IMG/VR virus record: IMGVR_UViG_3300027996_002186
Location: 1-64,000 of that record
Strand: one strand, 5' to 3'
DNA length: 64,000 nucleotides
Part shown: positions 40,527 to 45,258 of the stretch, in pieces
How the letters are laid out: every line of letters begins with the position of its first letter
Position numbering within the stretch: the stretch's first letter is position 1
The notes under the pieces: model-generated
The model's database searches: none
The model's input: the letters and a program-made list of their open reading frames with translations, nothing else
What the model was told of the DNA's origin: nothing
Made by a program: the position numbers and the translations under genes

Positions 40527-40907
40527 ATGAGAATAAAGAGATTCAATGAAATAGAAAAATCAGGAGAAATATCTGAAGGTATAGATGCTGATATCTTAGG
40601 TATCACAACTAACACTGGTAGAAGAACCGGAACTAGAAGTCCTAATAGAAGAACTCAATACTTTTATGATTACTATACTGGTAAGAAAATTAGTGGTAAA
40701 TCTAAATATGAATTAAACTCTAAAGTTTTTGACTTGGCTAAGAGAGATGATGAACTTGGTTTATTAGCTCAATTTTGTTTACAAGTTGAAAGAGATTCAA
40801 TGACTACTGATTATAGTATTACAGGACAAATGGATAAAGGTGGTTTGTCTGATGAATTTATACAAAAGATTAAAAATATCAGTGATAATATTGAAGGTGA
40901 AGAGTAA
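40527..40907 (+). CDS. N-terminal-motif protein
   Basis: MRIKRFNE...EISEG; TTAATATATA upstream. Confidence 0.8.
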   Translation: MRIKRFNEIEKSGEISEGIDADILGITTNTGRRTGTRSPNRRTQYFYDYYTGKKISGKSKYELNSKVFDLAKRDDELGLLAQFCLQVERDSMTTDYSITGQMDKGGLSDEFIQKIKNISDNIEGEE

Positions 40908-40918
40908 ATAAACTTGTT

Positions 40919-41140
40919 TCAATTTAATCTAACTATAACACACCCATAATTTGTAGGGTGATCAATAACATTAAAATTATAATCATAACAAGTTTCTTTA
41001 ACGATTTCTTTCATACGATTACTAATACCCGTTATAATTTCAATCTCAATCTCATTTTTTTGCATCATTTCCCAAAAGAAGGTATCTAACCTCCTTGACA
41101 CAAACTCATGTTTAATTCCATGTAAATCTAACTTTTTCAT
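40919..41140 (-). CDS. small Smr/MutS2-domain protein
   Basis: KLDLHG...IITG...NYG.VIV. Confidence 0.75.
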   Translation of the reverse strand: MKKLDLHGIKHEFVSRRLDTFFWEMMQKNEIEIEIITGISNRMKEIVKETCYDYNFNVIDHPTNYGCVIVRLN

Positions 41141-41157
41141 TTTAATATATATCTTAT

Positions 41158-41412
41158 ATGAGATATCTGAGAACATACAAAAAGTTTACGGAAAATGCTT
41201 ACGTAGCAGCATCCACTGCTGGTTCTGGTAGTGTAGTTGCTGCTCAACCTGGATCCTTACCTGGTACATTCGGAACAGATGGGTCTGGTGATATTGGGTT
41301 TACCTTTAAGAAGGAGAAAAGAAAAAAAGGTGATGTTACCGAGGTTAGTGATTTGAGAGACCTAGAAGAGGTTGAAATTGAGAAGGTTGATGATATAAAA
41401 ATCAAAAATTAA
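41158..41412 (+). CDS. N-terminal-motif protein
   Basis: MRYLRTYKKFTEN; TTAATATATA at 41142-41151. Confidence 0.8.
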   Translation: MRYLRTYKKFTENAYVAASTAGSGSVVAAQPGSLPGTFGTDGSGDIGFTFKKEKRKKGDVTEVSDLRDLEEVEIEKVDDIKIKN

Positions 41413-41427
41413 TAAGTTATTTAAAAT

Positions 41428-41696
41428 AAAAAAGAAACTGATTTACATCTGTGTGATCAGATATAATTTCAGTCTCTTTTCTTACGAGTCCAGAAGTTCA
41501 CAATTTCATTTACTCTACTACACACCTTTTAATTCAACCGTATCGGTATAGCTAATACTAATCTACTGCGGATTAAACAGATAAAGAATCCATAACCTCG
41601 GTAAAAGTTATCCCAATTTTCATCACAAGTTACCGCGAGTGATTTATATGAGAGTGATTAAACACTTTTTTAATTTCGGTATAAATTAAATACCTT
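41428..41696 (-). ncRNA. candidate ~265-nt structured ncRNA
   Basis: TATATTTG box (41701-41708); ORF-free; potential kissing loops; long terminal hairpin plus U-run. Confidence 0.5.
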
Positions 41697-41709
41697 AATA
41701 CAAATATAG

Positions 41710-41985
41710 TTATTTTATTTTAATATTTGATCTTTTTTTATTATTATATTTCTGAGCTTTCTCCTTGATATCGGTCAGAGACATACCAAATATTAATGCG
41801 ATTATTATTATAACTACTGACAATAAAGCAGTTGATATGATAATCAAAAATGGTATCCATAATGGAGATGTTACCCACCACCAAGACCAAGTTGCGACCA
41901 TACCTACTTCAGCTAATTTTAATCCCAAAAATAGGAGGAAAATTAACACAGGTAAACTCAAACCACTGTTATTAGATTTTGACAT
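41710..41985 (-). CDS. membrane protein (WSWWWVxxPLW family)
   Basis: LKL.....WSWWWVTSPLWIP motif. Confidence 0.8.
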   Translation of the reverse strand: MSKSNNSGLSLPVLIFLLFLGLKLAEVGMVATWSWWWVTSPLWIPFLIIISTALLSVVIIIIALIFGMSLTDIKEKAQKYNNKKRSNIKIK

Positions 41986-42057
41986 ACAATCTTTTTTATT
42001 TTATACCTATTTCTTATAATAAGTTTTCTATTTTTTTTTGTGAATATATGAGATTGA

Positions 42058-42252
42058 TTATGTAACTGAGACTTTTCTTATTTCAATGTATTCACTTTCA
42101 TATCCATCATATAAGTCTTTCCTATCCAAAGTCCAACGGCTCACACCCAATTGCTCATTACCATAATGAGCGTATAATTTTCCGAGGTTAACAAACACCT
42201 CTACTCTGTTCGTCAATTTCCAACGAATATAAATTATAGTTTGACTTCTCAT
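42058..42252 (-). CDS. hypothetical protein
   Basis: 64-aa ORF. Confidence 0.6.
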   Translation of the reverse strand: MRSQTIIYIRWKLTNRVEVFVNLGKLYAHYGNEQLGVSRWTLDRKDLYDGYESEYIEIRKVSVT

Positions 42253-42276
42253 ATATATTATAAAAAGAAGAGAGAA

Positions 42277-43056
42277 TTATACTCTCTCTTCCCAAAGTTC
42301 ACCAATATTAAGTAATCGATGTTGTATACCATACATATTTATAGTAGCACTTCTGTGGAAGTGACCATAATAGTGGTGTGTGATATCATTACCATTTAAT
42401 CTCAATAAATGAAACATATCTGTTATTTGATTTCGTTCAAATAACAGATCGGTTTTTAATTCTGTATCACCAGTATCTCTAATTATACCTTCAACAAAAG
42501 GACCAAGTCCAATGCTATTATCAACAGGACAATAATCGGGTGAGTTATGTGTAACTACAATATCGATGTCTTTCATGTTAGCTATTTTATCACGATCTAA
42601 TACGAATACTTCATCTTTCCACCAACTTTGACCTGGGTGTATTGTATAGTCACCTTTTCTTTGTTTATCAGTTCTTCTCCAATTTCTATCAACACTCACA
42701 GCACCACCAACACAAAGTATATTTTTTGTTTCGGTAAATCCTAATGTATCTAATTCTAAATTAAGGATGGTGTAGTCTGGAATAAGTTTAATATTACTAA
42801 ATCCAAATGGGTCATTATCGAAATAAGGTTTGAAGTCATGATTACCACGAATTGCGTATAACATGATGTTATTCTTCTCAAGAATAGTATTTACATATCC
42901 TAATGTTCGGCGCTCTTTCTCAAGAGTAGCAAAACCAACACCAAAGTCACCAACTTGAATTATGATAGCATCTTTTATATCATACTGCTTAACATATTGA
43001 TTAATCAAGTTAAAATTTCCGTGGATATCACCGAGATATAAAATTCTTTTTTTCAT
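42277..43056 (-). CDS. calcineurin-like metallophosphoesterase
   Basis: GDIHG, GDFG, RGNHD, VTHNSP, YGHFH; TATATTTG at 43061-43068. Confidence 0.93.
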   Translation of the reverse strand: MKKRILYLGDIHGNFNLINQYVKQYDIKDAIIIQVGDFGVGFATLEKERRTLGYVNTILEKNNIMLYAIRGNHDFKPYFDNDPFGFSNIKLIPDYTILNLELDTLGFTETKNILCVGGAVSVDRNWRRTDKQRKGDYTIHPGQSWWKDEVFVLDRDKIANMKDIDIVVTHNSPDYCPVDNSIGLGPFVEGIIRDTGDTELKTDLLFERNQITDMFHLLRLNGNDITHHYYGHFHRSATINMYGIQHRLLNIGELWEERV

Positions 43057-43122
43057 ATTACAAATATAAGTAAAATTTACAGAAGGCAAAAATTATTTAT
43101 AGTATATCATGATGTTACATGA

Positions 43123-43366: not shown

Positions 43367-43810
43367 TTAATTTTTTATTAAATATCTCACAACAGAATCC
43401 CAATTTTCGAATTTATCAGAACCAAAGTGTAACCACTCTCCTTCAAATTCTGGTTGTCCATCAGCGTCACTATCATCAATTAGGTATTCACCCTTCAATA
43501 ATGATTTGTCACCACACAGAACCATTCTTTGAACAACGTCAAATCCTAAGTGGTCCCAAATCCATTGTGCCTTTTCTGTGAAACAATTTACGTTTCTAAA
43601 TGAAGGTCTTGTTAGAATCCAAACATCATATTTTTCTTCTAGTTTCCTAAATGAATCAATTGCACCAGGCATTTCTTCTAATTTAAGAAAAAATCCCCAT
43701 TGAGATTGTGGATATTTTTGCTCAGGATATTTTTCTAAAGCTTCTGATGCGGCTTTGAAAAAATCACAAAGGACTCCATCCATATCTACGTAAACTTTTT
43801 TTCTTTTCAT
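43367..43810 (-). CDS. 5'(3')-deoxyribonucleotidase (HAD, NT5C-like)
   Basis: YVDMDGVLCDF, EK..W, DKSLLKGEYLIDD. Confidence 0.92.
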   Translation of the reverse strand: MKRKKVYVDMDGVLCDFFKAASEALEKYPEQKYPQSQWGFFLKLEEMPGAIDSFRKLEEKYDVWILTRPSFRNVNCFTEKAQWIWDHLGFDVVQRMVLCGDKSLLKGEYLIDDSDADGQPEFEGEWLHFGSDKFENWDSVVRYLIKN

Positions 43811-44551: not shown

Positions 44552-44815
44552 ATGTCAAAATCAGAAAACGTTAAAGTTAAGAAGAAAACCACTAAGAAAC
44601 CTAGTGCTAAAAAAACTACTCAGAAGAAAGTAGTTAAGAAACCTAAAGTTATTAAAGACCTAAGTTTATGGGCCTTAAACGAGAATAACGAAATCGAAAA
44701 AGTTATTGTACCACTTAAATATAAATTGGATTATATTAAAAGATTCGGTGTTATGGAAATAACAAATAAAACGGAGTTAAAAACTTGGTTAGAAAATATT
44801 AAATTAGTAGGATGA
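44552..44815 (+). CDS. Lys-rich hypothetical protein
   Basis: Histone-like basic N-terminus. Confidence 0.7.
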   Translation: MSKSENVKVKKKTTKKPSAKKTTQKKVVKKPKVIKDLSLWALNENNEIEKVIVPLKYKLDYIKRFGVMEITNKTELKTWLENIKLVG

Positions 44816-45258
44816 TTAAAATATCAATGGGTTCGGACCATGCTGGTTTTGAATTAAAACAGGAAATTAAAAAATACCTTCACACACTTGGTAATAAAGT
44901 TGAAATAAGTGATAAGGGTTGTTTTGTTGAGGAAAGGTGTGACTACCCAGACTATGCACATTTAGTTGCAGAAGATGTTGAAAAAGATATATGTGATTTT
45001 GGTATATTAGTTTGTGGATCAGGTAATGGTATAAATATGTCAGCTAATAAATGGGATGGTGTTAGATCTGCATTATGTTGGAACTCCGAAATAGCTAATA
45101 TGGCGAGACTTCATAACGATGCTAATATACTAACACTACCTGGGAGATATATTTCGGTAGAAGACGCAATAGAGTGTGTGTGTGAGTTTATGAAGACCGA
45201 ATTTGAAGGTGGTAGACACTCCGATAGAGTTGAAAAAATATCTATTTGTAGATCCTAA
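44812..45258 (+). CDS. rpiB: ribose-5-phosphate isomerase B
   Basis: GSDHAGFELK, DYPD, CGSGNG, ANK..GVR, ARLHNDAN, FEGGRH..RV. Confidence 0.96.
   Translation: MIKISMGSDHAGFELKQEIKKYLHTLGNKVEISDKGCFVEERCDYPDYAHLVAEDVEKDICDFGILVCGSGNGINMSANKWDGVRSALCWNSEIANMARLHNDANILTLPGRYISVEDAIECVCEFMKTEFEGGRHSDRVEKISICRS

Follow-up and report, generated by a model that had tools for sequence, protein, structure and literature searches.

Between two genes of a 483-kb marine phage lies a gap of about 280 bases, and we asked whether this gap is merely spacer DNA or a gene for a structured RNA. The DNA analysed here (the window) comprises 64,000 nucleotides, positions 1 to 64,000 of IMG/VR virus record IMGVR_UViG_3300027996_002186. 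The record is 483,262 bp long, 98% complete by CheckV and has a G+C content of 30%. Its large terminase is 83% identical to that of the uncultured megaphage LR745206 and 72% identical to that of LR756502, while the nearest cultured phage is Tenacibaculum phage pT24 at 40%. LR745206 (subsurface, Japan) and LR756502 (lake, France) have been placed among the megaphages above 630 kb, as sisters to the marine Mar_Mega_1 and with unknown hosts (PMC9723777). The sequencing runs that hold the sequence of the window are marine. A first-pass annotation of the gap (41428-41708, - strand) had proposed a tertiary-structured phage RNA of roughly 265 nt, of unknown class and with kissing-loop potential. Our results support this interpretation.

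A conserved element without coding potential

We first examined whether the described features were actually present. On the - strand, the region 41708-41428 lies between the stop codon of a 91-aa membrane protein gene (41985-41710, phrog_1374) and a convergent 84-aa open reading frame (ORF; 41158-41412). The sequence TATATTTG is found at 41708-41701. A first hairpin is formed by ATCAC (41643-41639) and GTGAT (41626-41622), and a second by ATAACTT (41611-41605) and AGGTTAT (41598-41592). The loop words CGGTAA (41635-41630) and TTACCG (41604-41599) are exact reverse complements. GGATT (41591-41587) and AATCC (41574-41570) follow, and a long interrupted terminal hairpin (41482-41428) ends in six U. 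The fold of this single sequence was only mildly better than those of shuffled sequences (z = -2.49, with 1 of 200 shuffles folding as well). The minimum free energy fold moreover uses some helices that the homologues described below do not keep. Its long-range helix and the pairing of the GAUGAAAA stretch with the P6 loop were both rejected on this basis.

We then examined whether the element corresponds to a known kind of gene. The longest ATG-started frame on the RNA strand is 16 codons, as the first-pass annotation had stated, and a 32-codon GTG frame lies on the + strand (41453-41551). No frame is conserved among the homologues, and reading TAG as Q, a recoding used by some megaphages but not indicated by anything in this genome, opened no frame. 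ARAGORN detected no tRNA or tmRNA gene in the whole window. A search of Rfam 15 gave no hits at gathering score in the 64-kb window. At E values up to 10, the only hit on the element was a chance mir-1252 match on the terminator hairpin, and no hit lay on the element in 8 homologous loci.

Homologues were searched for with four DNA patterns, and all hits were confirmed with covariance models. Two of the patterns fixed the two loop words; several identical copies were also obtained. We thus also searched without the loop words. A covariance model of the core, run over 21 related virus records, found a copy in a 436-kb record (G003). A pattern built on the joiner J6/7 and the P7 loop found loci L221, L213 and L227 (L-numbers designate individual loci), blastn with the G003 copy found LR756502, and a pattern built on the TATATTTG box and P1 found L259. 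The pattern built on J6/7 and the P7 loop also matched four times at a 75-nt spacing in L225 (3384-3662, IMGVR_UViG_3300013372_000873), indicating a tandem repeat that is unrelated to the RNA family and scored nothing with the core model. As a result, 16 sequences were obtained, 15 of them distinct in the core, with one copy per genome. All come from one clade of aquatic megaphages: LR745206, LR756502 and IMG/VR or JGI contigs whose large terminase is 72-83% identical to that of the window. The core is 72-89% identical across genomes whose flanks have diverged or been rearranged.

On the other hand, the strict pattern found no homologue in 185,579 prokaryote species genomes. It gave 7 chance hits, six of them in Actinomycetota, Acidobacteriota or Planctomycetota. 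No match was found in the more distant large phages LR756504, LR756501, LR756500 and pT24. A nearly complete relative (G004, IMGVR_UViG_3300032236_002285, 476 kb, 97% complete), whose terminase is 77% identical, lacks the RNA, the membrane protein gene and an AdoMet decarboxylase gene that neighbours the RNA in other loci. A weak model hit in G004 (L210) lies inside an ORF and lacks every flanking feature, and was treated as a false positive. The module is therefore accessory within the clade.

Covarying helices and complementary hexaloops

The structure was examined on a model-based alignment (A8). The six nested helices of the core and the loop-loop helix gave 95.3% standard pairs, against 32-46% when the partners were slid by 1-3 columns. 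Changes on both sides were found in 16 of 36 pairs, in 50 cells, and 0 of 500 shuffles reached this. An earlier count on alignment A5 agreed. Every nested helix of the core has compensatory changes. About 40 cells are G-U pairs, which would be A-C mismatches on the other strand, so the RNA is read from the - strand. These counts rest on few and closely related sequences (about six sub-clades and 1.45 effective sequences), and the nested helices were counted on an alignment fitted to the model.

The element contains about nine helices, more than the first-pass annotation had seen; it had missed P1, P2, P3, P7 and P8. P1, P2, P8 and the terminator hairpin lie outside the model, and their variants were read by eye. 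The 5' hairpin P1 (41678-41694; GGUAU/AUACC) displayed the compensatory variants GGUAA/UUACC, GGUUA/UAACC and GAUAU/AUAUC and the wobble variant GGUGU/AUACC, with no mismatch in 16 homologues. P2 (41653-41666; AGUG/CACU) is present only in the window, L105 and L096, where it covaries (AGUGA/UCACU, GGUGA/UCACC), and is deleted in the other homologues. P3 (41612-41652; 41652-41648 paired with 41616-41612) encloses P4 through an A-rich internal loop consisting of AUAA (41647-41644) and GAAAA (41621-41617). Three of its five pairs have changes on both sides (C-G/U-A, C-G/U-A and A-U/G-C), and AUAA is invariant.

P4 (41622-41643) is the first hairpin of the earlier annotation. Its stem (41643-41639 with 41626-41622), in which three pairs are compensatory (for example GUUAG/CUAAU in L221), is followed by a 2x2 pyrimidine internal loop, a closing pair G41636-C41629 and the loop L4, CGGUAA (41635-41630). 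The closing pair is G-C in 10 distinct sequences, A-U in 4 and other in 1. L4 is thus probably a hexaloop rather than the 12-nt loop proposed earlier. The internal loop itself (41637-41638 and 41627-41628; columns 16-17 and 26-28 of A8) displays a coupled change. The window, L096 and L221 have C on the 5' side and U on the 3' side, and eight sequences have U and C. As the three are not one clade, the swap happened more than once. In the class with a C-G central kissing pair, the same positions form Watson-Crick pairs. An alternative partner for this loop, GCGG/CCGC, is disfavoured, as L209, L213, L227, L233 and L259 have ACGG while CCGCAG stays invariant and its two Cs belong to P6.

P5 (41592-41611), the second hairpin of the earlier annotation, has a 7-bp stem and the hexaloop L5, UUACCG (41604-41599). 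Of its cells 99% are paired, and two pairs have changes on both sides (A-U to C-G or G-C). P6 (41570-41591; GGAUU/AAUCC) carries a 12-13-nt loop with a conserved AUCUGUU-like word. It is 100% paired with two compensatory pairs, one position showing four pair types. The single-stranded joiner J6/7 (41552-41569; GCAGUAGAU...) is nearly invariant in all homologues and no supported partner was found for it. A pseudoknot between the P6 loop (AUCU) and J6/7 (AGAU) is not supported, as L103 and L233 give C-A mismatches and there is no compensation. P7 (41518-41551; CUAUACC/G-GUGUGUAG, with one bulged U) is 100% paired, with changes on both sides in four of seven pairs, and its 19-nt loop holds the conserved word GAAYUAAAAG. 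P8 (41486-41515) is a two-tier hairpin with an outer stem GAGU/ACUC (variants AAGAU/AUCUU, GAGA/UCUC and GAAG/CUUC), an inner stem GAA/UUC (variant GAG/CUC) and a loop with a GUGA or GCGA (GNRA-like) word.

The 3' end (41423-41482) is read as an intrinsic terminator. The fold shows a hairpin of 23 base pairs (55 nt, 41482-41428) that takes in the six-U run. A simple terminator scan did not call it because its stem is interrupted; elsewhere the scan called, on both strands, a perfect 13-bp inverted repeat with a 6-nt loop (42418-42449). Near homologues show C-G to U-A compensation in the hairpin, and distant homologues have a hairpin of different sequence plus a U-run at the same place. The loops of the terminator hairpins (41434-41476, and the same place in L016, L209, L213 and L233) keep a similar word (UCACA, UCGCA, UCGCG) although the stems differ, raising the possibility that the 3' hairpins do more than terminate transcription.

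Concerning the kissing loops, L4 (CGGYAA) and L5 (UURCCG) are not part of the model, so the alignment is not fitted to them. All 15 distinct rows can form six Watson-Crick pairs. Five of the pairs never vary, and the central pair is U-A in 9 rows and C-G in 6, with no U-G or C-A intermediates. Two of twelve otherwise invariant loop positions vary, and the chance that these two are partners in the antiparallel register is 6 in 66. Taking into account that two of the four search patterns fixed the loop words, part of the invariance comes from how the sequences were found. A tree built without the two columns places LR756502 among the U-A sequences, and the switch then needs two events in every bootstrap tree. 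This suggests two origins, although an AU test does not reject a single one (p = 0.094).

Flanks, boundaries and presence in RNA libraries

We next examined whether the element is a gene of its own. The membrane protein gene lies upstream on the same strand in 8 of the 14 loci with shared flanking ORFs, directly next to the RNA in 7. In 5 loci a divergent AdoMet decarboxylase gene (PF02675) lies directly upstream, and the sequence upstream of L259 starts the same way. The RNA gene sits at a rearrangement boundary. When L108, L035, L109, L103, L211 and L259 are compared with the window, L001 and L096, the conserved block of neighbouring genes lies upstream and co-oriented in some genomes, and downstream and inverted in others. 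The downstream gene is convergent in the window and most loci and co-oriented in L213 and L227. In the window, the neighbourhood includes an Smr-like ORF (40919-41176) and a cluster of auxiliary metabolic genes encoding a calcineurin-like metallophosphoesterase (42277-43089, whose ORF contains the 13-bp inverted repeat), an NT5C-type 5' nucleotidase (43367-43810) and ribose-5-phosphate isomerase B (RpiB; 44812-45258). None of the neighbouring proteins is an evident RNA partner.

Conservation starts at the TATATTTG box (41701-41708), which matches the Bacteroidota-type -7 promoter element TAnnTTTG. T, A and TTTG are invariant and the two middle bases vary in all 16 homologues, while sequence upstream of the box is not conserved. 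The promoter reading is nevertheless weak, as the motif is not enriched in this genome (798 found against about 773 expected). A -33 TTTG is present in L209, L213, L227 and L233 but not in the window. The SusC-like gene reported for LR745206 (PMC9723777) and the terminase match to the Tenacibaculum phage add weak support. Alternatively, the box may be the conserved 5' leader of the RNA.

To look for a transcript, we examined marine sequencing runs. Six metatranscriptome runs held 0.21-0.39 of the sampled words of 41300-41850 (551 nt), whereas DNA-type runs held 0.77-1.00. Contigs of four RNA runs from three studies were then compared with 40900-42300. Each run gave a single contig, 100% identical to the window, at 41490-41706, 41491-41704, 41491-41679 and 41478-41645, and nothing lay on the flanking genes or elsewhere on the remaining 1.2 kb. 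DNA carry-over would cover the flanks equally. The element is therefore present as a discrete RNA, far more abundant than the mRNAs of its neighbours, although contigs give no strand, no true ends and no expression level. Two contigs from different studies begin inside the box (41706 and 41704) and three end at 41490 or 41491, before the terminator hairpin, which fits poorly with a start downstream of the box. A promoter further upstream, processing from the upstream mRNA, or assembly break points where strains diverge could each account for these ends.

Interpretation of the RNA

Taken together, the window region 41708-41423 (- strand) is best explained as a separate gene for an abundant, stable, structured non-coding RNA of about 265-280 nt, belonging to a so far undescribed family confined to one clade of aquatic megaphages, the relatives of LR745206 and LR756502. 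We give this reading a probability of about 0.8. In decreasing order of certainty, we infer that transcription starts from its own promoter, next to or upstream of the TAnnTTTG box, and stops at the terminal hairpin; that the kiss is intramolecular; and that the compact RNA acts in trans as a scaffold or decoy for a host or phage protein rather than as an antisense regulator. P3, P5 and P6 follow one another with 0-2 nt between them, and the conserved A-rich joiners AUAA and GAAAA could bend the P3/P4 arm so that L4 reaches L5, and would then lie along a groove. The long invariant single strands (the P6 loop, J6/7 and the GAAYUAAAAG word) would remain free for a partner. The proposed function is an inference only, as no partner protein, target or phenotype is known.

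Covariation cannot tell whether the loops pair within one molecule or between molecules. Head-to-tail pairing between molecules, building dimers, a closed ring or a cage during infection of marine Bacteroidota, is the strongest alternative, although we consider it unlikely and there is no direct evidence for it. L4 and L5 are complementary to each other but not to themselves, which allows head-to-tail chains. All six bases of both hexaloops pair, and all-paired kisses appear to stack head to head, which is awkward for two hairpins joined by 0-1 nt plus one short helix. The kissing loops of ROOL and GOLLD were first taken for tertiary contacts from covariation, and cryo-EM later showed them to be intermolecular bridges (PMC12286853). 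RNAs under 200 nt, such as manA, form a 60-mer (bioRxiv 10.64898/2026.07.01.735769). On the other hand, the internal loop of the P3/P4 arm could provide the bend needed for an intramolecular kiss, much as the kinked P2 arm seems to do in the lysine riboswitch, and the RNA is smaller than the known cage formers and not near tRNA genes.

A base-pairing regulatory RNA, in which L5, the P6 loop, J6/7 or the P7 loop is a seed and L4 masks L5 until it is needed, is somewhat less likely still. The long invariant single-stranded words and the stand-alone gene with a terminator are consistent with this possibility. However, in the phage's own genome no complementary site of 12 nt or more was found for any conserved segment beyond what its A+T-rich composition gives. 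L4 has no site of 10 nt or more and L5 only two 10-mers, about chance. Eight covarying helices and this size are also far more than seed-type sRNAs usually need. The L4 region of the window (CGCGGUAA, 41630-41637) may share 8 bases with the universal 530 loop of 16S rRNA, where L5 could then pair, but the word is not kept in most homologues (UGCGGUAA, ACGGCAA) and the resemblance is probably a coincidence.

It is doubtful that the element is instead a structured 3' UTR or processed 3' fragment of the membrane protein mRNA, or a cis-regulatory element. That gene lies about 55-80 nt upstream in 7 loci, and the RNA contigs begin 4-6 nt after its stop codon in the window. However, the RNA, its box and its terminator are intact where the upstream gene is divergent, no RNA contig covers the membrane protein gene, no downstream gene is consistently regulated and no riboswitch family matches. 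An A+T-rich spacer with chance hairpins, a small protein gene or a DNA-level site, for which only the modest single-sequence fold and the fact that the terminal hairpin also reads as a terminator on the + strand can be cited, is largely refuted by the conserved core, the covariation with strand-specific G-U pairs, the absence of a conserved frame and the restriction of the RNA contigs to the element.

We compared the RNA with known systems. As phi29 packaging RNA (pRNA, Rfam Phage_pRNA), a stand-alone phage RNA of 120-174 nt, probably does, it has two loops complementary to each other with the pairing kept by covariation. The resemblance is in principle only. There is no covariance-model match, pRNA loops pair over 4 nt and between molecules, the helix layout differs, and pRNA belongs to small phi29-like phages with protein-primed genomes, whereas this is a 483-kb megaphage with a Terminase_6N-type terminase. 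ROOL, GOLLD and manA RNAs are likewise phage or prophage encoded, abundant, of unknown function and equipped with conserved kissing loops detected by covariation (PMC12286853; bioRxiv 10.64898/2026.07.01.735769), and manA and GOLLD occur in marine samples. No Rfam model of them matches, the present RNA (about 270 nt) is much smaller than ROOL and GOLLD, which exceed 500 nt, and no tRNA genes lie in the 64 kb. The lysine (6 bp), purine and cobalamin riboswitches probably hold neighbouring arms together by a comparable loop-loop helix, but the present element is not upstream of any consistently regulated gene, ends in its own terminator, and has no family match or candidate ligand. HIV TAR-TAR* and ColE1 RNA I-RNA II, which likely pair through entire 6-7-nt loops, form between two different RNAs, while here both loops are in one transcript. 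The protein-sequestering 6S RNA, CsrB/RsmZ and Y RNA correspond to the functional model we favour, being abundant, stable, trans-acting and ending in a terminator. However, the element has no 6S-like long duplex with a central bubble, no repeated GGA loops, no Rfam match and no linked partner protein gene.

Megaphages with genomes of 480-640 kb are known only from metagenomes and most of their genes are unexplained. To our knowledge, within the literature we could search, no structured RNA other than tRNA and tmRNA has been described for this clade. No known RNA family or class can be assigned to the present element, although its mechanism may still turn out to be of a familiar kind. The compact RNA, with its covariation-supported fold and its presence in marine RNA libraries from three studies, is a ready target for asking what abundant phage RNAs do during infection. 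Its pair of fully complementary hexaloops makes directly testable whether natural loop-loop covariation reports tertiary or quaternary structure, a question recently reopened by the ROOL and GOLLD structures.
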